Positions 3,455-53,759 of a DNA stretch of 64,000 bases are shown one piece after another (position 1 is the first letter of the stretch; each line of letters starts with the position of its first letter). The notes beneath the pieces are model-generated. The model made no database searches, was not told the origin of the DNA, and was given only the letters and a program-made list of their open reading frames with translations. This DNA is from Bugula neritina. Its lineage: Eukaryota > Animalia > Bryozoa. The translations under genes were made by a program, and so were the position numbers. The DNA is taken from positions 30,954,628 to 31,018,627 of the forward strand of contig OZ037767.1 in NCBI GenBank assembly GCA_964035545.1, read 5' to 3'.

Positions 3455-5443
3455 CTAAAAAGCTCCAGCTTGGTAGTCACTCCGGTCAGGTCGTCTGGCT
3501 ATTGTTGCTCTTTGATAGGTGGCCCGTCTCTTGGAAGCCTTTATTCTCTGCAGATCTTTTTTGTGGGTGTGCATTACCAGCTGTTTTCCAATCGTTATTC
3601 CTAAAATATCATAAACAGCAGCAAGAGCAGTACTACCATCATTGAATTGTAAGACAGCACAGTTGACAGCAAGTTCTAACCTAGGCTTCTGCACAAACTG
3701 CACTTTAGGGCAAAGTAACCAAATTATCCTATGAAAAGACTCGTTATTATTTTGTGTACCCCCATGCAAGCATTTTGAAAGCAGAGAATCGGCTGTAAGA
3801 GCTTCAAAAACCGGTTTTATCTCTTCTAGTACAAAAGGTGGGAGACTATTCGAATTACCATCACCACTACCATTTACTGCCGGGCAAGAATTATCACATG
3901 AGCTATGATTCCTATTCCTATGATGCCATATTCTCCAAATGCTTGCTTTCATACCCTCTAAGTTTCCTACATTATTCCTAATAGCTGCTCCATAATGACC
4001 CTGAATTCTCTTTATAGCAGCTTTATGCAACTTACCACTACCTCCTATACCTTTATACTTACGGCCTTCCCAATAAAACTCTTTTCCCTTACATTGCTGC
4101 ACTTTATCTAATAAAAGCTTGCCCATTCGCTTTTGCACATGACCTACGCATTCAAGTTTCTCAACAACAACATCTGGGCCATAGGGTTGGGCCTTACTTA
4201 CAGCACTATAAGACTTGGAGTCTCCATCCCCTAAATATTTTACAAACCGTACTCCTCTCTTCTCGACTGACCTCCTGAAAATTCTAACCATACCTACCGG
4301 CTCCATACCACCAGCTGAACCCTCATGATTTTTGACACAACTATGCTCTGGTGGTATACTATCTTTATGACTGGCACATGTAAAACAATAACTAGAGAGA
4401 ACTTCAGTATCAACTACTTTACCTGGTTTTCCTACTGAATGGGTAATAACAGTAGCTACCCCATTCTTACTACTAAAGCCCCTACGCTGCCAGGTACCAT
4501 CACAAGATACTGTTATATCACTACTGTTACTCATACTAGCAGCTTCCCTGGCAGCCTGGTCCATTGACTTACTAGCTAGCTCCTTAGTAATGTTACCAAG
4601 TCGCTCTACATCCTTGGCCCACTCACTAAAAGCGACAGGTGGGGGCAAACCTAGATGAGCAGAAATAGTTGCAGCAGTACTTCTATGCCCACCTGCCAAG
4701 GTTGTACCAAAAGCCAACCGAGTATTCAAAGAAAACCTATGATCTACATCACGATCACTCATTACACTACTTTCAATAAGAACACCACAAACAGAACAGG
4801 TAAAATCAAAAGCTGGTACAATTCCACTATGGCATTTTACACTAATTCGCAAGGACATAGCAGGGTGATCTTTACAAGCAATACTACCAGATGACAACCT
4901 ACCCATAAGTTCTAAAACTAACTTAGTCTGCACTATAATACTGTCAGGCTGAGAATTTGCAGAACTAAATAAGAAATTTGAAGTACTTAGCTGATCATTT
5001 AGTTTAGCAGAGCTGGCAGTTGCAGCAGGAGTAGTGCCGGTAACTGTAGGTGTAGCATCACTAGTCAGACTCAAAGAGCTGGAGGCAGTCGGTGGTATAA
5101 GTTGATGGTCAGATGCAGCAGACTGGGGCTCCAATTGAAAGTCCATAGTACTAACTGAAAAGCTTGTAGATGCACTTAGATGTGCAGTAGAGTTAGTTAC
5201 ATTAGTGTTACTAATAGTAGTAGCGATAACTGGCGTAGCGGTGCCGGCAATAGTAGTAGTAGTAGTAGTAATCGTCATGGGTGGTCTAGTAGTAGGCGTA
5301 GTTGTGGGCGTCGTTGCACTTGCAGTTGAAGGCGTCGTAGCACTTGCAGGCGTCGTAGTAGTAGTACTAGTAGTAATATCTAGTACTGGGTCAGCTTTTC
5401 TGTACTGATTTCCTCGAAACTGCCTTTTTTTAACCTTAGGCAT
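3455..5443 (-). CDS. Kolobok-type DDE transposase (domain often labelled 'Mutator-like transposase'), 662 aa, intronless
   Basis: Motifs: N-terminal KKRQFRGNQY, CxxC, SCDGTWQRRGFSSKNG (D), YLGDGDSK (D), KLECVGHVQKRMG, CLHGGTQNNNESF (E), FNDG. Lies inside the TIR/TTAA-bounded element. Confidence 0.92.
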   Translation of the reverse strand: MPKVKKRQFRGNQYRKADPVLDITTSTTTTTPASATTPSTASATTPTTTPTTRPPMTITTTTTTIAGTATPVIATTISNTNVTNSTAHLSASTSFSVSTMDFQLEPQSAASDHQLIPPTASSSLSLTSDATPTVTGTTPAATASSAKLNDQLSTSNFLFSSANSQPDSIIVQTKLVLELMGRLSSGSIACKDHPAMSLRISVKCHSGIVPAFDFTCSVCGVLIESSVMSDRDVDHRFSLNTRLAFGTTLAGGHRSTAATISAHLGLPPPVAFSEWAKDVERLGNITKELASKSMDQAAREAASMSNSSDITVSCDGTWQRRGFSSKNGVATVITHSVGKPGKVVDTEVLSSYCFTCASHKDSIPPEHSCVKNHEGSAGGMEPVGMVRIFRRSVEKRGVRFVKYLGDGDSKSYSAVSKAQPYGPDVVVEKLECVGHVQKRMGKLLLDKVQQCKGKEFYWEGRKYKGIGGSGKLHKAAIKRIQGHYGAAIRNNVGNLEGMKASIWRIWHHRNRNHSSCDNSCPAVNGSGDGNSNSLPPFVLEEIKPVFEALTADSLLSKCLHGGTQNNNESFHRIIWLLCPKVQFVQKPRLELAVNCAVLQFNDGSTALAAVYDILGITIGKQLVMHTHKKDLQRIKASKRRATYQRATIARRPDRSDYQAGAF

Positions 5444-6388
5444 GTTTACTGTGTCTGTAGTATACGTGCTGCTATGTTAGAGACTTATATAACGAGTCGG
5501 TACGAATATAAATATTATGTAATATTACTAATGTCAAAATAAGTAAATCACGGCACTTCGTAAAACAAAATGTTGATAAATATAAAGTCAAATATGTCTT
5601 CTCTTTATTTTCACCGGTTGTAGAAGATCTAGATGAAGGATTGATGGTAAATTATCAGATTGTTTTGGCAGTTTGGAATATTACGTGTAGCTTCTTTGTT
5701 CGTTTTGGCAAACAGGATGTGCGTCACAGATCACGCGATAAGCACAGCCAATAAATGAAGTGAATCGCGGGTCACGGGGTCAGGGTAATAAAATCCGACA
5801 AAACTATGCTAAATCAATTATCTTTGTTTTGCCTCAATGCGCTTACTGAGAGGTGTTATACACTGCCCATTAGTAAAGTAGGCTTTTCTGAAACTAATGC
5901 TGTACAGTGCAACTGAGAATGCCGAGTTGAAAACAGTTAACAATGGTGCTAAAGTTAGTGATTATGGCTGCATTTTTTTTGTTTTTCACACCAGTTGCAA
6001 CAAAGGGGTAACTTTAAATACACAATTTTAATAGAAAGAAAAGTAGAATATCAAAAAGAATCACATCACTCGAATCTGGAAATTTTAGAGTTTTTATGCA
6101 TAGTAAAATCCAAATATGGCCAAATTGACCACAATTTCTTAATTTTTAATCATAGTCCAGCCTTAATTTAAATGATAGGCATACTTGATCCTAAAGTAGT
6201 TCATCTTCTAAGACAACCAATCACAAACGGCTTTATAGATCGGCACTTTTGATTTGCTAACTGAAACTCTTGTATAATCATATCATATTGGGTATATATA
6301 TGAATGCAGCATATGGTTATAGTCATTTAGTTTATTGCTATCCACCGAAGCTGCACTCTTAAACAAGGATAATTTTGCAGGTGAAAAT

Positions 6389-9217
6389 ATGTCGAAGTCT
6401 GTCACAGCCGGTTCTTGTTGCACTGGAGTACTGATTGTTGGGTCACTTCTCTCTTATATCCTGTGTATTGCTATTAACGCTGTCTTTAACATTCCTAGCA
6501 TCAGTGAGTTTACTAGATGACTGTATGTTACTACTATATGATATGTAACTTGATGGTCATTGTTTGGTAATTAGTGGCAATTTCTCTAGTTAATAATAAT
6601 TACTTAGAATCTATGCATAATATTATGTTTATATAGCCTTTTTGTAGTTTGTCTGCAAGTTGTGTTGGTCATCTCATAATATTTTTTATTGGGCAATAAA
6701 GTTTGTCATGGCTTACCATTTCATATCCATATAAAATATTCAGTGGATATATGATATATATCCACTGATATATAGGTCTATTTAATGAATATACCATATG
6801 TGATGTATGCTATAGGATATATTTAATGGATATATCATATGTAATGTATGATATATGATATATTTAATGGATATATCATATGTGATGTATAATATATGAT
6901 ATATTTAATGGATATGTCATATGTGATGTATTCAGTAAATATGTGGTATACCATATGTGATGTAATATATATTATATATTATACATTCAGAGGATATGCC
7001 TATCTTTCTGATTATGTCTGATAATGAATAATAATTTATTCCTGCTATGTTATGTCAATGCAAACACAAATTACTATTAAAACAACCTCCTATGTAGGTC
7101 CGTTCAACACTACTATTGCAAACGTAAGTCACAAGTACAACACTGGAATCACACCTTCTGATGCTACATTCTCAATATGGGGTAAGGTTTCCGTTCTCCT
7201 CTACTTCCTCTTTGTCATGCTGGTTAACCAATCAGCTGCTCCATTCTATCAGTTCATTATTTTGTGCTGCCAAAGGTCAAAGTTATTCAAGGTCAAAAGT
7301 TACTCATGTGTTGTGCGAACATAAATAGACAAGTTTAACTCCTACTATTAGTAGTTTGTATTAGTAAATACTGGAAGCTAATCATTTCTATTACTTTTGG
7401 CTAAGTAGAGGGAGGTAATTACCAAGTGTTTTTTTCATAGATTGTGCAATGATTTCAGTTATTAATGCTATAGCACTTGATATATGCTATTTGTATTGAT
7501 ACTATAGCACTTGATATAGGATGTTTGTATTGGTGCTATAGCACTTGATATATGCTATTTGTATTGGTACTATAGCACTCAACCTGCGCTATTGTATCGT
7601 GTAAGTATAATGTTGCATACTATTATGAGACGTGAATATGTACCTACAGTGTTGATATACCTCTGGCAGCTGGCACTAGTAGTGTACGTCAGCACTCTCT
7701 TGTGCAGGAAGGCTGGAAACAAACCACTATACATCTCTCCTGGATTCATCCCCGCCTCGTTTCTACTCTCCTACATTGTAAACTTGCTGGGTCAGTTTGT
7801 ATAACTGGATTATCATATCTAATGTAACCTTGGTACTTTGTCTGCTGACCCATAAACACTGATTAGACACTGTTTACATAACTAAAAGATTAGCATAGAG
7901 CAGTTTAGCTGTAGGCTCGATATTTACAGCCGTGAATTATGACATTGCATAAAGTCAGGTATATTAATTTGACGTCTGGTTTGTCAGAGTATATCACTAA
8001 TTATTGTTATTGTTGCCAATCTCAGTGACACACTCAATATGTTGAGCAACCACGTTGCCTTGGTGATATTCTACTAACTCTAGGTAACCCGGCCTGGATA
8101 TATGTGTTCTTCTTGGAGGACAACGTCAAGGCTCTGGGACTGCTTCTCCTCGGAGTTGTCACCCTTGTTATATGTCTGGTGAGTTCCTGCAGTCAGCTGG
8201 AGCAGAGCGGTGCTGAGATGGAGATGAAGGGGCTTCTGGGAGATATCTGGTGCACTCGGATCATTGTGCAGAATGGTAATACATTCGGCATAATGACTTT
8301 ATAATACTGTAATGTGTAATAGTGTATAATAATAATAATATACTGTATAATACTGTATAGTATATGTATAATACTGTACACTGTATAATACTGTACATTA
8401 TATAATACTGTATAACACTATATAATACTGTATAGTTTACTGTATAGCACTGTATAATACAGTATAGCACTATATAACACTGTACTGCAGGTATTGCGCT
8501 GTACTTGGCCTGGGCGACCTGTGCCACGGCCATCAACACTGTAGTTGTCCTCACCTACATTCTCGGCGTCAGCATGAGCTCAGCCTGCTTTGGAGCTCTC
8601 GCTGTGATCAACGCCATCATCGTTAGTTGGTTCGTTTTGGAGACATTCCTGTACGACAGGCAGCTGAGGTGAGCGGCAGCAATGAGTCTACAGTGTTGCT
8701 GAGGCAGCAGTCTTTAATTGGCCTTCAGTCTAGTTTTGGTTGTGATTTGAGCTTCAGGATGAAATTAAAGATGTGTTTGGAATAATATGAAATACAATCA
8801 AGCAAGATAGAATGTTTGTGATGTGAACTTATGAACCACCAGTCCCACGCTAGTTTCAACCTTCATTTGTTTATGTCATCCATTTTTGTTATGTTGTCTT
8901 CTTGTGTGTACATAATTGTTATGCTATTTACTTGTAGATACATATTTGTCACATTATTTACATGTAGGTATGTGTTTGCCCACTACATCTCATACATCAT
9001 TGCTTTCGTTGGCGTCTACAAAGCTCAGTACGACCCCAGCATTCCTTACACCATCTACGAGGTCGTCCTATTGGCTATCGTCTCTGCTCTAGCCCTCGCT
9101 AAACTCATCATTATGATAGTTCGGGCCGTCAAAGACCCCATCCACTATTCTAAACTTAGTGACGGCATCAGTTCAAAGGAAGTGCCATTTGTGAAAGTTA
9201 TGCAAGTTCACTATTAA
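6389..9217 (+). CDS. Uncharacterised multipass membrane protein, TspO/MBR-related (about 319 aa, 6 coding exons)
   Basis: Exons 6389-6503, 7098-7181, 7650-7790, 8084-8275, 8491-8668, 8968-9217, all GT-AG with consistent phases. Motifs VSHKYNTGITPSDATFSIWVLIYLWQ and QNGIALYLAWATCATAIN resemble tryptophan-rich sensory protein-like families; many hydrophobic helices. Confidence 0.8.
6740..6965. repeat. Intronic ~41-bp AT-rich minisatellite
   Basis: Repeated ATATATCATATGTGATGTATGATATATGATATATTTAATGG. Confidence 0.75.
8276..8490. repeat. Intron made almost entirely of a ~10-bp TATAATACTG repeat
   Basis: Repeat runs from donor GTAATAC to acceptor TGTACTGCAG. Confidence 0.8.
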
Positions 9218-9739
9218 TCTTTAAGCAAAGCACGAGTTGCTTGACCTTTATATAACCTTCCCCATCTTAATATAAGTGTACTAGCCACTTTTCTTCTTTT
9301 TTCGGTGATTATTACTATTAGAGTATTTTTATTAATATTACAAATATTAATCTCTTACATGTTATAGAATTTCTGCTCCATAAACTCTTTTCTATGATTA
9401 TTTTTGTTAAAATTAAAGGCTGCATCACGAATCCGTTACATAATTTGCATTTTGGTCATACATTTTTACAATCTGAATAATTCTTATTTTTATATATCTA
9501 ATCTTGCAATTGAATAAATATTTCTCTATTTGACCCATATTGTCACTGTGACCCTGGTTTCTATGTCAATACAGATATGATGCAGTTGTTACCTCCATAA
9601 ATCCATTTGTCAAACACTTGCTGTTAAAGTTCAATCTAATGACATGTAACTGTCAACCATGTCATCAGCCTTGGTTATGGTTATGTGAGTGTCAACATGA
9701 TGATAAGCCATGTTAATTTATTTACCAGTTGGTCTACTG

Positions 9740-9810
9740 CAGTAGTTCCCAACCTGGGGGAATTCCCCCCTAGGGGGGAATTTGTACATTTTAGGGGGGA
9801 ATTTGGATTT
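9740..9810. mobile_element. hAT (Charlie/Buster-like) MITE terminus, partner end not seen
   Basis: CAGTAGTTCCCAACCTGGGG resembles the hAT TIR CAGTGGTTCCCAACC. It is followed by the perfect palindrome AATTCCCCCCTAGGGGGGAATT (9761-9782). Confidence 0.6.
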
Positions 9811-11650
9811 TGAAAAACTCACGCAATATATTGATGGATTTTTGAGCTCTTGCAAGTTACATGTATATCTATAAATCTTCATCTTAGTTCATCTGTTTAA
9901 CCAAACCATATTCTGCAATCTCAGTTTACTTCTACATGAATGAGTTTATTAATTACTCGCCATCTAGCTGTGATGCAATTTTATGCAAAAAAATATCTAG
10001 ATTGAGTTTCTTAACACAGCTGATTATTTGTTATACATAAAGAAAGCTTGCTACAGTTAAAATTTTTGTTCAGCTTGAAATTACAACTTACAGGCATATA
10101 GGTAATCTAAATTCCATGATATACAATCAAGAGAAGATAATTCCTTTAAATACAAACAAAGATTAGTTTTTGCAGGGTATTAAACAGCTAATAGCTGTAC
10201 ACATAAATACTATAGTTACATATCTGGACATTTTTATTAAGCAAACAGAAACTAAGGAATGTCCAAATTTTTGCCCTCAACATCTGTAATTATTTTACCT
10301 GCATGTTTACCTGCAAACAACTGCTTTATGTTTCAGCAACTGTCATTTTCAATGCTAAAACAATGCAACATATAATATTTATATTAATTTATCAGATATA
10401 TATAAAGTCATCAATACTTTTGTTTTGCTTTAGTGCAGTAAAAATTGTGTGCTTAAAATAATTGTAAGAATTAATAAATTGTTGTTCGGACTTCAAATTC
10501 TGTCTAAATAATATGTGTAGCATATTTTTACATGCATAACATATTCTGATTTAACACTTGCAATGATTTTCTAACAATTGAAGTCAAAAACAACTGGAAT
10601 GGTCTTACTACTCATTGAGATTTACATTTAAAAACCGCCACATATACTGGAGTACGCTATGATGAAAGAAGTATGATCAATATGAAGTACATTTCATACA
10701 TTAGCCATTTACTTCATACAACTGTAGCCTATGTAATGTCCTAATCATACTATAGCGGTTTCATCACGCACTCACAAATATATTATGTTTATATCTAATT
10801 AATATAAATGTGTGAAGGTAAAATGCATTAGTATAGTAAAAGGCTGCTCACACCCAATAGAGCTTTGTCTAATATAACAGGTGTACCACATTGTGGTTAG
10901 CTGTGTGAACCTCCCAGCCTATTGCAGTTGGTTACATAAACCTTCCAGCCTATTGTAGTTAGTTCACAAGGTCGATGCACTACTTCCATAGCACGCCCAG
11001 TTCTAGTTTTTAGCCCTAATTTGCAACATGACAAGAATAGGTGGAGCTTTTCTGTACAGAAATTACTTTCTAAAGTAGACTTTAAAAACAAGCTAATTAT
11101 ATTTTTATTTCTCACTCGGAGTCAATTTTAAGTTGGGTCTATTTTTGAAACTAGATTCAGATAACTCATGCACATGATTTTAGCATATTATTTCAAAGGG
11201 CCATTAAAATAATATCTTCTTACATGAATTTAATGTATAGGGACTGTACACAATGAGGTCTCTATCATGTAACTGTCACAATTGTCATTATTATGATAAT
11301 TATTAGATATAAAAGCTATTAATGATCGCAAAGCCAAATAAAAAGTTTTTCCCATTATTACTCATGTATCAAATAATTTAAACAGTATTTTAAACTAAAT
11401 CAAACCATGAATTTGAAGACATCATAATTATTTTTAAAATTGATAACAATAAATGCAACATAATGTAACTATTAAATTAAAAAACAACAGTTGTAAACTG
11501 GTTATAATCAACATAGACATTAACTGACTTTTTCACAAGTGTTATAAAATTTTACTGCTTTTAGCACAACAGACCAGCTATTTGAAGTGTCAGAACATAT
11601 CTTCTTCAGCGTACCAGCGCTATTGGTGGTTACTTGGTATTACTTCAGAC

Positions 11651-14600
11651 TCAATGTAAAGAAAATCCATTTTCGTCTCGATGAAGAGCGGAGTATTGCC
11701 GAGTTGGGTTAGAGACTTCTGCGGCGCCTGGAACCTCATACGTCTGCTGGGGCTCTCCCGGATGAACTGAAGTCAAGGTTTGCTCAGGATCTTGATAGGT
11801 ACCGCCATATATGTCATTACCGGCTGCAAATGTTGTCATTGGTGCAGTTGTCCTCCCCTGTAAGGCTGGATCTTGATAAGTATCACTGTAGATACCATTG
11901 TTGACCCGAGACGTAGCTAGCGTGTTGCGTGCGTTCAGTGAAGGGTCTTGATACATAGCGTAGGTGTTGTTGGAAGACTGAGTGAGGCTGGCTGACCTAG
12001 TTATTTGACCTACTTTCTGGGTGTTTTCAGGGTCTTCATACTCGTCACTTCCCCAGTCCGCTGGAGGTTTAGACGATATCATAGTAGATTTCTGAAAGGA
12101 ATGCATAGCTGGTGGCATCGGTTTCAATGTTTTGCCATTGATTTCGTAGTCGACATGAGAAATGGCTTCGTAGATCTCGCCGTCGGCACCAGGACTGTAC
12201 TCAGTTTCTTCTGTTGGTATCTTCACTTGGGCTCTTGGAGGTGGCAAAGTCTGTTAAGAGAAAGTTGTGATTATATCTTAGAAACATGTTTGAAAGGAAG
12301 CTTTTAACCAAGTGTCCAATTACATCATTTATAATACTTGATAGAACTACAGTTTGGAGTCTCTTCTTATACAATATTGAAAACTTTAAACATTATAGAT
12401 TGTCATAGAAATATCTAAGTAAGCCAAAAGTTTGAATGGAGCTAGGCTTTATAAAGTAGAACACACAGTAGGAGCATAATTTATAAAAAAAACTGCAGTG
12501 TTAAAAGTTGTCGCCTAGAAGTTACGGCAAGCATAGCAACGATGCATGGCTGTAATCATACCACACCCTATGTAACGCTCAGGAGAAAAGCAGCCATACT
12601 TGCTCACAGACAAGCCAACCTAAATTCTGTACATCATCTATACATCCAACATTAGTTCAAAGTGCATTTATTAAAATAATTAATTCATATGAAGTATTAA
12701 AAAATTACTCATGTTAATATATTTAAATTTAAGGGATGTTGACTTGAATTAGCATAAGAGACTCTACATACTGGTTGCTGGTTCCCAGGTATAGCCATGG
12801 TGGAGTTGTAGTTCATGTTGTGGAAGACTTGTTGGTAAGGGTCTACCTCCCCCCTGTTGGCTCTTCGGCTGTAAGAGTAAATAGAGTGCTAACTAGACTA
12901 CAAGCACTTGCTTCAAGCTGTCATGCAATAACTAGACTTATACTGTGTGACAAGCACTTGCCCCTGACTGTCATGCAATAACTAGACTTGTACTGTGCGA
13001 CAAGCACTTGTTCCAATCTCTCATGCAATAACTAAACTTGTACTGTGACAAGCACTTGTTCCAAACTGCCATACAATAACTAACAAACTAGTTTATTCCA
13101 ATAATTAGATATGTTTATGCATGGCTATGATATTTATAATATAGTTATAAAGTTTAAATATTAATCTAATGTAAACTTACTTTTTAACTACAATTGTGAC
13201 TATAATGATGAGTCCGACCATAACCACAGCAGGTACAGCTGTCGCTACTATTACTGTCGTCATATCCAGTTGATTGCTGCTCCCAGAACTTCCTCCTTGA
13301 AGGTTGGACAGGTTACCTCCGTCATTGGTCGTCCCTTTTGGTATGTGACCAAGTCCAGCTACATAGAAAATATCTCAAGTATAAAATGTACATGTTTTTT
13401 ATACCTTATCATAAGTGATTCAAGATTCATAAACAAAATTCAAATTATAATTTATAGCTACATGGTATATACATGTTAGCTAATAGTAAAGTGTAATGGA
13501 AGGGAAGAATTTTTTTATATGATGCAAAAACATGATAATGGTCCTAAAACGCTGTAGGTGTCAATAATTCTATTTTCCACCACTGAACAGATTACAAAGT
13601 TTGAAAGCTAATTAGAAAAAAAGTGACGCCTAAGATTACAAAATTATAAGGTTTATTTTAATTAAAAATCCATCTCCTATTTATTTTATGCATCTTTATA
13701 AGCTCGGTATTAAAATTGCTAAATAAATAAGTGTTGTGTAATCAAATGTGCTGTAATGCTATAATTTCAAATGTATATTATTATGTTTTCAAATAGAATG
13801 TTATATTTCCAATTGTATTACGGTAGTTTCAAATGTGGAGTTACAAACAAAACCTCACAGAGATTGGGAGTTGGGTGGAATATTAAGGAAGGTTCACACT
13901 GCATGGTGGAAGGACAAACAAAGAAGGTATATAATGGTGCTGGAGCTATTCCAATACTTTTTAATTTGTTTCGGTTATAATTTCAGCAAATGATGCTACC
14001 GTTTTCATGGTATTTTAATTATCATAATTTGCATATAAATTGAATCTCATATATGCTCATTTGCTGCAAATTAGTTCCCTATCTAAATATTTTCCTCAAT
14101 AAAGTTGTTGAATTAACTCACTTCCATGCGCATCATGCTGAATGCCTGTTTTCAATCCGCCTGACAGAGTCTTGACGGAATTGCTTGTTGAAGACTCTGT
14201 TGGTGTGGAAACCGACGAAGAGATAACTGTTGTAGTGGATGGTGTATGTTTTTGTGTGACTCTTGTAGTAGCTGTTGTTGGAACCTTTCTTCTAGGAGAA
14301 GGCCTAGTAGTTGTACGAGTAAATCTGGTTGTTGTAGGAGTGGATCTAGTAGTGGTAGGGGTGGATCTAGTGGTTGTAGGAGTGGATCTTGTAGTGGTAG
14401 GGGTTAATCTGGTAGTCGTAGGAGTGGACCTTGTCGTGGTAGTAGAGGTTGTAAGGGTGGATCTAATGGTGACCCGTGAAACAGGTCTAGAGGTTATTAG
14501 AAGAGTAGGGCTAGATGTGGGAGAAGGAGTTCTTCTAGGTGTGGGACTGGGGGTTGGTGGGTGAGTGGATACAGTATCAATCTGTGTGATGGGGGGTTGT

Positions 14601-17600
14601 TTTCTTGTAGTAGTGGTAGTAGGTTGACCAGTTGTTCTTCTTATTTGCGCCGTACAGTTTGAAAAACTGAGGAACATGGTGTTGACTAAGCAGTTCCGTA
14701 AATCTACAAGAAACACACAACTTGATTGGTGCGTTTCTTTAATTCTCTTGATTAATTGGATAAGCTTGATTCTCTGTTAGATGAGCGAGAGGTCCAGTGA
14801 TCAGTTCAGTTCTATTATGTTGCATGGTTAGAAGGGGTTTTAAAGTTAAAATCTTCTATAATTTTTATTATAGAAAAGCTGTAGATTGCAATAAATGTAT
14901 CTATACCTAGTTATTTGATAAGGTTAACTATCTTTTAAATATAGTTTTGAGCAAAAAAATTAGCTCCTAAAAATTGTTGAGTTTTTTTGTTAAACCAAGG
15001 AATTAGGTTTTCAAGGATTGTTTTAAAACTTGATTTTCTTGTAAATTTTACCTATTTACATTTTATGAACGCTTTTAGAGCTACACCTATGTTCAACGAA
15101 GGCAGGTGATTGCAGGTTAGTATTAGCAAGTGTGTTAGTATTCAGATACATTGCTAGAGGTGATCAAAGGAGCTAGTGCAAGTTGATATACCTTCATTCC
15201 AATACTGAGTGTTAGCGTAATCCACCTCATCAGAGTCTGAGTCTGACTCATCCCTAAGCACTCTGCTCAAACCCCCTACACACAAAATCATATTCATTTG
15301 TAGGTTTTAGTTTGTTGAGTTTTTATTAAACATTGACAGATAACTTGCGCTCTTTGGTATGAATTAAATTAATTTTTTTTGAACTTGGAAAAATAAATAT
15401 TGTTTTATCTCTAGCATCAGTTTACTGGCTATTTTGAAAAAAAAAACAGGAAAAAATTTGTCCTTATTTACTGATTTGGTGACTCTATGCAACGGCTGCT
15501 GTTGTTTTGAGAATAAATTATGTAAGTTTGTGTTTATTAGTTTCAGCTGATGTCAGATAGAAGGAAAGCAAATAGGTACTATATAAGACAATCACTGTAC
15601 AGTAAGAGGTGTTAGCAAGAACTAACCAACAGCACAAGACAACTGACACTGGACTCTACACTCTCCTAGACAGACTAAACAATTCAGAGCAGTTGTGATG
15701 GCCCAGAGTATACCCAATACACCAATGTTATCATTCTGAGCTTCAGAGACACAACATTGCATACTTCACAAGTTGTGCATAGCCTAGGGCAGTTTAATTT
15801 GAGTTTGCGCCCAGACAATTTCTCTTTACCAAAAGCATTTTACTTATGTCAGCTTTTAGCAGTTATTTACAGCATATATGCTGTACTCAAGACTAAATAG
15901 GAAAAGTATGCAATAATGTGCCGGAGAGATTAGGTTGGTTATGTCTAAAGTTATCTCTCTACTCACGTGTAATTCCTGACAGCAGGTCGTCGACTGGCCG
16001 TAGAGTAGTCGTGGTTGCTGAAGGGCGTGTCCTAGGTGGTCTGGGCGTGACTCGACTTGTACTAGGTACAGCTGATGTTTTTGTAGTTGGAGTTCTCGGT
16101 TGGTTGTTCAGGGCCGTAGGAACAACTCCCCCTATTATGTAGCGATGTTCAACACTCCTAAGCCATATGTTGTTGACCTTCACCTTTAACCAATAGATCA
16201 TCACATCTCCAGGCCTTACATCTTCGTCAGAGTACTCGTGGAACCAGATATGCTCAGCTACATACAAGAAAGTTACAAGATATAAACAAAAGTATGTGAC
16301 TCAAACCTATAGCAATGGCAGAGCTTTAGAATGCAGTCGTGTGCTTAAAACTTTTAGCTATGAGGTAAAGTTTCTACAAGGTTGTCAAAACTATTTTATT
16401 TTTGTACTCATGTGTGGCGGATGTATGTCACAGCTATAGGCATTTAGGGCTTGGCTTTTGACTAACCTTAAATTGCAGGTACCCTATCAAGTTCAAATAC
16501 TCATACAGATATAAGTTTACTTGAATCAGGAGAAACACAATGCAGGTTAAATAGTTGTATTATTCTTAAGTGTAATTTTATTAAAACTGCAGTACCTTAA
16601 ATACTACTTAAAGAGTATATGAACATTGCTTTAGTTCCAAGAGATATTTTACCCTAAATCTTGCTGGCATTACACGCGAGGGTTCATTTACAAGTCTCAG
16701 TGTTTCATAACCAAAGTTGTAAACATTAGACTGTGGCAAAGGCATGATGGTGACGTGCTTTATGATTTCATTAAATGGTCAATTAGAAGGAATTCGATTC
16801 CCACTCAGGATAATTAAAGATTGCAAAACACGCATGAAAATAGAAGTACAGCCTGGTAGATGGTGCCCGCTTCCCTGTCAATAAGGAATCTGCCGAGAGA
16901 TTATCCCATCCCTACCCTTAGGGTGATTCAAACACACTAACAAATAAACATAAAATGTCAATTTGATGAATTGTCAAGGCAACATACTTCTTGTATCATC
17001 AGTTTGGGCTGTAGCTTAGTAACCACGTGACATGTGTACACATAAGTCTCACAGCAATGTCCTCTGATTGAGTCATTAGATATAATCTTATATTTGTTAT
17101 TGTGTCTTCCTTAAAGATTATTATCAAAGTTGAATGGGATTGTGATCCTCTGTTTGTAACATTATTTAATAAGTTAATTTTGAAATATGAAAATTTTGAT
17201 GGCTCAAGTTTATACTGGTGATGGTAAAAATATGCAGCCATTGATGAGGTCATCACATACCAACAGGACGAGTGCTGGAGGAGCTCTCGGATCCCGAGCC
17301 AGAGTTGGAGTAGTGTTCCCCATGAGCAAAGCCAGTGATGTTGTAAGAGAGATAGGAAGATGTAGAGCCCTGGACGTCTAAAGTATAGAACAGCAAACTT
17401 TATAATAAAATTGAAAGACTTGCTGAGTGTTTTCAAATCTATAATATAATTATAAAATAATAAAATCTGCAGCATTTTTAAAAACAATTTAATAAAAACT
17501 CTCATATTAATAAACATATGCTTTTTATATAATTACTTGCCTAAGTCTAAAAAATGCTGTTTATATGTTATATGCTTTAGTTAATAAATCAGTTTCCGAC

Positions 17601-19689
17601 TCAAACATCTGAATTTGTTTATAAAAATTGCATCTAACTGCAATTCGAAAATTCAGTTTTGTATTCAAAATATTTTCTAACCACTTTTAAATGTACTGCT
17701 AACTGCTTATAAATAAAATGTTATAAATCAGTACCTTTCTTGATCTGCTTGAAAAATTTTAAGTTAAGAATGTTTAGATGCAAATTAAAGCAATGAATGC
17801 AAACTAAGGATCAGTACCATATAAGAAATAAATAGCATTCAAGTATTACGACAGTGCATTTGTACAGCTAAAGCTCTGCTTTGTATCGTGCTAACTAAAC
17901 TAGGCTTTACGTGCATAAAATAAAATATTCACCTAAATAAAACAGTATCACGAAATGCAGTTCAATGCTTTTCTTTGTTTAATGAAGCTTGATTTTGCTT
18001 TATATGCAAACAATAAATCTACATGCAACTATGTTATGCACATAAAGTTAATTTGAAGCCTATTTTTATTTTGAATCATATTTAGAAAAAATACAGTATT
18101 TGTGATGTACTGATGTGGCGTAAGGCAGCTAAGAAAGCTGATGGCGTTTAAGTCACAAGACTATTGCGTTACTTATAAATACAATTATGATAATTTTACA
18201 TCAGAATATTTTATTAATATAATAATTATACAAATATATTCATTCTCCCAAATTTCACCACAGCTATAGGTGTATGAGACTCATTATAATACGTTGTATT
18301 GTGTTGAAACCATAATCTTTTGTTTGCAACCAACAGAATAGAAAATTATGCAAATAAAGGGCGTGGAAAAGCCATCAGTTGGCATAGATCTAGTTAGTGT
18401 TTGATCTAATAGGGTATCAGTATAGAGGTATGAACTTAGTTTAAATGATGTAGCCTCACTTCCATGTTGACACCCAGTTAATGCATTGTCACAGAAAGGA
18501 AATGAATATAAGAGCTGGCATCTAGCAAACTGCACGCAACCTGCATCTAATTGTAATCATGGTGAAGTATTTTGCTTGTTGCCAAAACTCTAATTGGTTG
18601 GACTGAACAGGCTATAGTTGCCAACTCTTAGGTTTGGGGAGAGTCTGGCCATGAACTGTGGTTAAAGTTCTTGTAAATGTCAAATTAGTCTAATTATAAT
18701 GTAGTAAATCAAACCTAATCTCTTTAAATAAGAATATTTGAGCTTTGCTTTACAGAACATTTTCAAAGTTGTTTTTTAGTAAATTTGAGATTTTTTATTA
18801 TAATGATGCAATATTGCGGAATTTATGTTTGGGAGAGATTTTCAAATACTCACATAATGTTACTATACAATTTCAGCAGCTAATCAGATCAAAGAGTTTT
18901 GGAGTGGAAGTCAATGATAAAAGTTTCAATAATTTCATATTATGTAAGTCTGATTTAAAATGAATACTTCATCATCTGTATTACATTATTACTTCAATGC
19001 TGTTTTTTAAATGTTATGCAAGCACTTTGAAAAAATTAATCTTCAGGCTGTAGAACGACAGATCTATGTTGCCTAATACTTCCATGTTGACACCCTGACA
19101 TCTTATTATATAATCTTATACATTTTTAATACTAGAATTTCTGTGCACAAAACACGTGCAATTTCTTCTTGTTTTATTCAGGCATTAAATAATACGCTAA
19201 AATTTGAAAGACTCCATTAATAGTATAATACAATATAATTTGTTTGTGTTAAAGTTGAAATCAACTAACAGAGTAGAATGAGGACTTTTTCCTTGCACCA
19301 TCTCCAATATATGGTCTAAGGTAGAACTTATAATGGTGAACCTGACTAGCAACCCTATCTGTACAGAGTACAGACCAGTTAATAAACCTACTATGTGTTT
19401 GATTGAGTTAATCTGCATAAGTATTGTTTGACTGTTTAGCCAACTACAAGAGGACTATTACAGGTTTTAAAGAAATTCGTGACGCAGTGAGAAGTAGAGC
19501 AGCTGCTATACTGCAACAGGTAACCGACTTACAAGTTCTCACAGTGAAGTAGAGGATAGGATCTTCGTTGGGAACTTGCTGGTACAGGATGTCAATGTCG
19601 TAGTCATCTTCTTTCAGAGTATTGGCAGCGCCGAGTGCTGCCAGAGACAGCGTATGCGCTGTCAGCAGTAATGTCTGTATCCCAACCAT
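11651..19689 (-). CDS. Type-I single-pass receptor-like protein (about 701 aa, 8 exons): signal peptide, CBM39-like domain, Thr-rich mucin stalk, TM, Tyr-motif cytoplasmic tail
   Basis: Exons 19689-19533, 17377-17261, 16257-15967, 15275-15192, 14703-14122, 13358-13181, 12868-12772, 12250-11651. All GT-AG, phases consistent, 2106 nt open. TM VIVATAVPAVVMVGLIIIVTIVV followed by KNRR. Tail has YEDP, YQDP x3, YEVP, YEAI, YSAL. Confidence 0.85.

Positions 19690-36893: not shown

Positions 36894-53759
<16,866 letters not shown>

Follow-up and report, generated by a model that had tools for sequence, protein, structure and literature searches.

A gene at 19689..11651 on the minus strand of a 64-kb stretch of DNA from the bryozoan Bugula neritina (contig OZ037767.1; "the window" always means this whole stretch of 64,000 nucleotides) raises the question of whether a glucan-sensing module has been built into a membrane receptor. 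The module in question is CBM39. In arthropods, proteins with this domain are the textbook case of a soluble sensor for fungi and act via extracellular protease cascades. The best explanation overall, to which we give about an even chance, is that the gene encodes a bryozoan type I membrane glycoprotein with a CBM39-derived head, a mucin stalk, and a signalling tail made of tyrosine motifs. The part of this reading that concerns ancestry is the firmer one: the head is very probably a divergent CBM39 homologue, without formal Pfam membership.

The gene was originally predicted as an eight-exon open reading frame with a signal peptide, a globular head, a long stalk, one transmembrane helix, and a tail of about 230 aa with 14 tyrosines, and both an exon scan and our feature counts agree with this description, which is confirmed together with the gene model. 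All AG and GT dinucleotides lying at most 4 nt from each edge of the open pieces were scanned exhaustively; only two open 701-aa models survived, differing solely at the E1/E2 donors, and one of them was retained because it agrees with the transcript joints described below. In the encoded 701-aa product of eight exons, every intron is GT-AG and the phases are consistent. Reading along the minus strand, exon 1 (E1, 19689-19533) carries the start codon, encodes the signal peptide together with the opening strands of the head, and ends in phase 1; E2 (17377-17261, phase 1-1) contributes the middle of the head, including a sequon for N-glycosylation (N-I-T/S) that is conserved and a loop rich in Ser and Gly; and E3 (16257-15967) encodes the C-terminal half of the CBM39-like head (16112-16255), after which a Pro/Thr stalk begins. 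E4 (15275-15192) is a short, acidic exon of 84 nt, probably a cassette, with symmetric phase 1-1, and E5 (14703-14122) has the composition of a mucin-like Thr/Ser/Pro stalk. A Gly/Ser juxtamembrane segment and the sole transmembrane helix lie in E6 (13358-13181). E7 (12868-12772) supplies the basic residues for stop-transfer and a conserved block in which one of two tyrosines belongs to a YxxV motif, and E8 (12250-11651) the Tyr-rich cytoplasmic tail (199 aa plus the stop codon). A script run on the joined product found a hydrophobic N-terminus, a single strong hydropathy peak at approximately residues 440-468, and five N-x-S/T sequons. A 50-bp tandem repeat of 3.7 copies is also present inside intron 6, at 12900-13082.

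Two public sequencing runs with the same organism label, X1 and X2, were compared with positions 11651-17650, a stretch outside which E1 lies. Run X2 gave even coverage throughout and behaves as DNA. Run X1 is RNA-like, with a word depth of 170-1250 over the seven exon-bearing bins vs. 0-47 over the intron bins. Sequences from X1 skip exactly from 17261 to 16257 (E2/E3) and from 15192 to 14703 (E4/E5), and the borders of these skips read CT..AC on the plus strand, i.e., GT..AG on the gene strand. Loose ends at 14122 and 13181 are read as continuing into the starts of E6 and E7, respectively, and a loose end at 17368-17371 as continuing into the 3' end of E1; X1 contigs also lie within E5. The gene is thus real, transcribed, and spliced as modelled. 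That the exons join as predicted is borne out by the two skips and by the loose ends at E1/E2, E5/E6, and E6/E7, whereas the E3/E4 and E7/E8 joins are backed only by depth that is restricted to the exons and by the colinear orthologue described next. The X1 contigs are 90-95% identical to the window and therefore derive from a divergent strain or sibling type.

A full-length, colinear orthologue was found in Watersipora subatra (XP_067945933.1, here P0003; 569 aa), where it is annotated as an "uncharacterized protein". This is isoform X2, and isoform X1 (P0019, 626 aa) has an additional 57-aa module with two cysteines, corresponding to Bugula E4 plus the start of E5. Database searches used either single Bugula exons or P0003 as a stand-in. 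E1 is 64% identical to its Watersipora counterpart (alignments A1/A2), and further partial orthologues occur on contigs L009, L010, and L014 from metagenome or run assemblies. Contig L010 carries E3, the Cys module, the transmembrane exon, E7, and E8; E1 and E2 were not found in it within the 713 nt available upstream. In an exhaustive HMMER search of 1.84 billion representatives, E8 matched only seven clusters, and the two of these with a species name are both bryozoan (Bugula and Watersipora). Searches with the Watersipora head, with Bugula exon 3, and with the mixed alignment A7 retrieved only Bugula and Watersipora proteins, and no homologue was detected outside the group formed by Bugula, Watersipora, and the L contigs, such that the family has so far been seen only in bryozoans. 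Three Bugula database entries are fragments of the gene: KAF6037925.1/EB796_003774 is the tail, EB796_003773 is a piece of the head in the wrong frame, and EB796_018711 is E1 read through past the first donor. The published Bugula annotation therefore splits the gene into at least three pieces and, since it is fragmented there and "uncharacterized" in Watersipora, the corrected gene model is useful in itself.

A relationship of the head to CBM39 is indicated by Pfam matches below threshold. The head comprises about 115 aa (approximately residues 23-140) at the mature N-terminus, and CBM39 (PF15886, gathering cut-off 25 bits) was the sole Pfam family matched by the head piece of Bugula E3 (20.6 bits, E 3.9e-4, profile positions 58-95 of 107) and, in Watersipora, by the full head (20.7 bits, E 3.6e-4, profile positions 30-96) as well as its C-terminal half (21.2 bits). 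The whole Watersipora protein scored 18.3 bits (E 2e-3); for Bugula exon 3 and the Watersipora head, E values ranged from 2.5e-4 to 5.2e-4 (20.2-21.2 bits). With longer queries, CBM39 topped the few sub-threshold Pfam matches. In the ESM-Atlas, the two feature clusters nearest to the Watersipora head are likewise CBM39 (0.94 and 0.92, with 193 and 186 features in common).

The Bugula genome has its own CBM39 genes, and these allow a closer comparison. Four orthodox CBM39 exons exceed the cut-off; C1 has a tandem set of three (5.41-5.43 Mb) and C5 the fourth. The genuine Bugula GNBP exons score 32-40 bits against the Pfam profile and match the insect structures 3AQY, 3IE4, and 2KHA (E 7e-7 to 2e-5). 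At the orthodox loci (L002-L005 and L008; C1:5413165-5428237 and C5:278480-278881), the domain is spread over three exons with GH16-like exons downstream; downstream sequence was read at L002, L003, and L005, each of which runs on into a GH16-like exon, and such an exon also lies downstream in L004. The tandem C1 genes and the C5 gene are the orthodox GNBP/betaGRP-type genes of Bugula neritina. A weak PF15886 match at a further locus, L007, was dropped, as stop codons lie beside it.

When the orthologue profile of our gene (A2) was aligned by hhalign with the last CBM39 exon (exon c) of the four GNBP genes (A4), a match with a probability of 92% and an E value of 6e-7 was obtained over 30 columns. 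The real score of 36 compares with a mean of 9.7 (standard deviation 2.3, maximum 20) over 300 column shuffles of A2 and with a score of 14 for the reversed alignment. The block identified by hhalign as homologous to bona fide CBM39 is a core-strand block reading W-x-F/H ... G-D-x-I/V-Y-Y/F-W. The gene structures agree as well, in that the domain is split by two phase-1 introns both here and in the Bugula GNBP genes. Intron 1 interrupts the same codon as in the GNBP genes, 11 residues before a conserved Y-x-I-N/T, with Gly at +3 in all Bugula genes, and intron 2 interrupts a codon three (GNBPs) or four (this gene) residues before the conserved Trp. The likeness to CBM39 that had been predicted for the segment at the start of E3 is to a large extent supported, with Pfam scores that stay below the gathering cut-off.

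CBM39 domains fold into an Ig-like beta-sandwich, some 100 residues long, with sheets of three and five strands. AlphaFold2 (AF2) yielded two models of the head, both eight-strand, immunoglobulin (Ig)-like sandwiches with predicted local distance difference test (pLDDT) scores of 60.7 and 62.3; adding paralogue exon-c rows brought about only the rise from the former to the latter. Compared by VIA-align, a low-confidence AF2 model aligned with the CBM39 structures 3AQX and 3AQZ at Z 7.9 over 89-90 of about 100 residues, and with CBM56 at Z 8.0. Searches of the two models by Foldseek, VIA-align, and ESM-Atlas fold search retrieved generic sandwiches only. Structure prediction with fold search, as proposed with the original prediction, accordingly delivers an all-beta sandwich that aligns with CBM39 over its full length, but at a pLDDT of 61-62 and without singling CBM39 out.

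Several of these results weigh against a CBM39-derived head. All head Pfam scores are under the 25-bit cut-off (20-21 bits for the best pieces), and exon 3 of L010 had no Pfam match at all. The N-terminal two thirds of the head have no significant CBM39 similarity, hhalign with GNBP exons a and b giving E values of 0.18 (though in the expected register) and 0.46. By sequence, the A2 profile misses the insect CBM39 structures and returns only non-significant Ig V matches in the PDB, where the head sequence alone retrieved nothing. Lastly, CBM39 is tied in the fold comparison, on models of low confidence, with fibronectin type III (FN3), Ig, and GH2 sandwiches, whose top Z values are 8.5-8.8. 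Such sub-threshold scores, a similarity limited to some 30-40 residues, fold searches indifferent to CBM39, and a PDB profile search that finds nothing beyond non-significant Ig V matches are also what would be expected if an Ig/FN3-like domain without relation to CBM39 had come to carry the motif by chance or convergence. We nevertheless consider chance or convergence very unlikely, given that the hhalign score lies 7 standard deviations above the best of 300 shuffles, that CBM39 comes first by two methods in two orthologues only 42% identical there, and that two intron positions with their phases are shared with genuine CBM39 genes of the same genome.

Descent from CBM39 is one matter and glucan binding another. 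Reviews describe Trp76 (Trp77 in fly GNBP3) as crucial for glucan recognition, Asp49 as touching two glucan chains, and a Tyr-Trp-Tyr platform in GNBP3. Residues were mapped from our protein through the Bugula GNBP exons to 3AQX. The equivalent of Trp76 is Trp in Bugula and Watersipora; three further findings tell against a glucan-binding head, namely that this Trp is Phe in L010, that the Tyr two places after it is replaced by Lys in all three species, and that the C-C' loop bearing Asp49 in the moth proteins is here a Ser/Gly-rich, possibly glycosylated loop in which Asp49 has no clear counterpart. Binding of beta-1,3-glucan by the head is, as judged from these residues, plausible yet far from assured, and even with homology granted we put it at slightly below an even chance.

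The same residues raise the possibility that CBM39 ancestry was kept while glucan binding was lost, the head having come to bind another ligand (chitin, zooid-wall polysaccharide, a self glycan, or a protein). The known contact set being only partly recognisable, with the Asp49 loop turned Ser/Gly-rich and the Trp turned Phe in one species, fits such a loss, as do the conserved N-glycan sequon in the middle of the domain, the restriction of the family to bryozoans (as expected of a lineage-specific structure), and the four orthodox CBM39-GH16 genes that remain in the genome for glucan recognition. It sits less well with the best-conserved block being precisely the two paired strands on which the glucan-contact Trp of the insect domains lies, or with beta-1,3-glucan being the sole CBM39 ligand known from the literature. 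We hold a change of ligand to be unlikely on balance, and assign the same low probability to its consequence, an adhesion or matrix-anchoring receptor of sialomucin-like type whose Tyr tail would be linked to the cytoskeleton.

Between the head and the membrane lies a stalk of about 300 aa (residues 140-450) consisting of 27% Thr, 13% Ser, and 10% Pro. Tandem Repeats Finder detected a 21-nt repeat (7 aa, Thr-rich) of 6.6 copies at 14304-14442 on the minus strand, within E5, and the protein thus has the long, repeated Thr/Ser/Pro ectodomain next to a transmembrane segment by which membrane mucins are recognised. The stalk is probably heavily O-glycosylated. Two cysteines, at 221 and 233, mark a small module (15192-15275 plus 14640-14703) that separates the head-proximal part of the stalk from the mucin repeats. 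Conservation of the module extends to L009, L010, and Watersipora (P0019 residues ~268-324); in Watersipora, its inclusion is alternative. The transmembrane segment itself is nearly identical across Watersipora, L009, and L010.

The 228-aa tail with its 14 tyrosines is the other part of the protein that speaks for a signalling receptor. In a five-species alignment of exon 8 (A6), the other sequences are 47-55% identical to that of Bugula, and 48 of 199 positions are invariant, including all 12 exon-8 tyrosines; the five YxxP prolines and a G-x-I-Y-E-A-I block are likewise invariant. In order, the motifs are E-x-Y; the invariant G-(D/E)-I-Y-E-A-I; V-D-Y-E-(I/L/V), which reads YxN in three of the five species; W-G-S-D-E-Y-(E/D)-D-P; three paired (I/V)-Y-x-x-x-Y-(Q/R)-D-P units, the first with the shorter spacing T-Y-x-M-Y; Y-E-(V/I)-P; and Y-S-(A/V)-L. 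The two-Tyr block of exon 7 is conserved too, in P0003, L009, and L010. The alignment indicates that the tail tyrosines are under striking constraint. No relatives of the tail were detectable outside the seven HMMER clusters, and an ESM-Atlas search with the tail gave no usable match.

As a general rule, pY-E-x-I suits Src-family SH2 domains, pY-x-x-P suits those of Crk, Nck, Abl, and RasGAP, and pY-x-N suits Grb2, while YxxPhi is a sorting signal for the clathrin adaptor AP-2. Under these established specificity rules, the conserved tail tyrosines sit in recognisable SH2-ligand contexts. Two properties of the tail count against a signalling receptor of the predicted kind. It contains neither a canonical immunoreceptor tyrosine-based activation motif (ITAM; YxxL/I-x(6-12)-YxxL/I) nor an acidic DEDG-YxxL hemITAM: the nearest Tyr pair (YEAI and the next Y-E-I/L) is spaced 8 residues apart and its second member has no L/I at +3, and the invariant D/x-G-D/E-I-Y-E-A-I block merely resembles a hemITAM. 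In addition, three conserved Tyr motifs double as plain YxxPhi sorting signals. From its sequence, the motif set as a whole (five YxxP, YEAI, YxN, and YxxPhi) points to docking of Src/Crk/Nck/Grb2 type or to endocytic sorting, rather than to Syk.

Endocytic sorting would be central if the receptor bound beta-1,3-glucan for feeding, capturing algal laminarin or chrysolaminarin or food particles on an intracellularly digesting gut epithelium, with a tail acting mainly through YxxPhi (AP-2) signals. The algae that bryozoans filter from suspension as food are rich in beta-1,3-glucan, and there are three invariant YxxPhi motifs, namely YEAI and YS(A/V)L in exon 8 and YQQV in exon 7. Sorting, though, leaves nine further invariant tyrosines unexplained, of which five are followed at +3 by a Pro that is itself invariant, and we find both the feeding role and the mainly endocytic tail quite unlikely.

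The signalling receptor that we favour could work as follows. The head would be an Ig-like beta-sandwich that diverged from the CBM39 encoded by the GNBP/betaGRP genes of the same animal, and the ~300-aa stalk would hold it clear of the membrane. The single transmembrane helix would be followed by a disordered 228-aa tail serving as a conserved array of tyrosine motifs. A polymeric carbohydrate, for which beta-1,3-glucan is the first candidate, would be bound by the head and, being multivalent, would cluster the receptor. A Src-family kinase could then dock at or phosphorylate the invariant YEAI block and the paired I/V-Y...Y-Q-D-P units, and the five YxxP and one YxN might recruit SH2 adaptors of the Crk/Nck/Abl and Grb2 classes, which in turn would drive actin-dependent uptake or a cellular response. 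The receptor would thus do by direct signalling what the soluble GNBPs do through protease cascades. From ligand and phosphorylation to adaptors and biological role, this scheme is inferred. We raise more tentatively, and with considerable doubt, the broader idea that cheilostome bryozoans re-used the GNBP glucan module for a cell-autonomous signalling receptor, so that the principle of Dectin-1 would have been invented independently in a lophotrochozoan. If the proposal is true, a CBM39 recognition module can feed directly into cellular signalling or uptake. The gene would then also provide bryozoans, in which immune receptors have to our knowledge hardly been characterised, with a first concrete candidate for a receptor of cellular immunity or of glucan uptake.

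A search for paralogues, which the original prediction had called for, turned up nothing beyond a single duplicated exon 8 when the genome was searched with the head profile, the transmembrane exon, and the tail. This copy belongs to a segmental duplication of about 7 kb between window positions 6163-12727 and G000:C3:30940758-30947804, which lies 7-14 kb before the window start, and which carries exon 8 along with the stretch that lies downstream. Identity in the flanks is 81-85%, apart from two short blocks at 69-78%. The 600-nt exon itself is 99% identical, with six differences (three non-synonymous), its frame intact, and 20 nt of acceptor context identical, and no other exon of the gene was found upstream of the copy. 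Either gene conversion or a role of the copy as an alternative last exon is suggested by this pattern.

An intact open reading frame of 662 aa (3455-5443, minus strand) separates the gene from the duplicated exon; its N-terminus is Thr-rich, and it encodes a transposase domain of Mutator-like type (Pfam PF20700, E 2e-59). Elsewhere in the window, a 15-bp minisatellite of about 45 copies at 37561-38241 is open in several frames on both strands and coincides with a strong GC skew at 36-40 kb. A second array, of 23 bp, follows at 38482-38613, and an exon of a GH31 alpha-glucosidase gene was found at 41772-42209 on the plus strand (Pfam PF01055, E 2e-17).

Among known systems, the closest to the head is the N-terminal domain of betaGRP/GNBP3 (3AQX, 3AQZ, 3IE4, and 2KHA). 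In both cases, some 100-115 aa at the mature N-terminus form an all-beta sandwich (predicted in ours) with a conserved W-x-(F/H)-E ... (P/Q)-G-D-x-x-x-Y-W block, and the intron positions within the CBM39 exons of the Bugula GNBP genes are held in common with our gene. Unlike betaGRP/GNBP3, the Bugula protein has no GH16-like domain after the head, secretion is replaced by a mucin-stalk membrane anchor, the head falls below the Pfam cut-off, the Asp49 loop is replaced, and signalling would be cell-autonomous instead of running through a serine-protease cascade. A CBM39-family protein at the cell surface is not without parallel, given that Drosophila GNBP1 has a glycosylphosphatidylinositol-anchored form; that form, however, has a lipid anchor without a cytoplasmic tail and keeps its GH16-like domain.

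The stalk and tail find their nearest counterparts in different proteins. MUC1 has an O-glycosylated repeat stalk, a single transmembrane segment, and a short tail that is disordered and bears motifs of the Src and Grb2 types, and p130Cas offers repeated YxxP docking sites for SH2 domains of the Crk/Nck class. Our protein resembles MUC1 and the sialomucins in its repeat stalk of O-glycosylated type, single membrane pass, and Tyr-motif tail, and p130Cas in its YxxP array. Its tail, however, is not similar to theirs in sequence, a SEA domain is absent and, in contrast to membrane mucins, the stalk is capped by a discrete head resembling a carbohydrate module. No description of an architecture combining CBM39, a mucin stalk, and a Tyr tail was found in literature searches on transmembrane CBM39 and on bryozoan glucan recognition.

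With Dectin-1 (CLEC7A), the likeness is one of proposed logic only, i.e., a stalked membrane beta-glucan receptor whose tyrosine signal is triggered by clustering on a particulate ligand. Dectin-1 is a type II protein with a C-type lectin fold and one hemITAM that recruits Syk, whereas the Bugula protein is type I and CBM39-like, has 14 tyrosines mostly in YxxP contexts, and shares no homology with it; the analogy is purely functional and speculative. By that analogy, the Bugula protein may function like a membrane pattern receptor, while being neither a C-type lectin nor formally a Pfam CBM39 protein.

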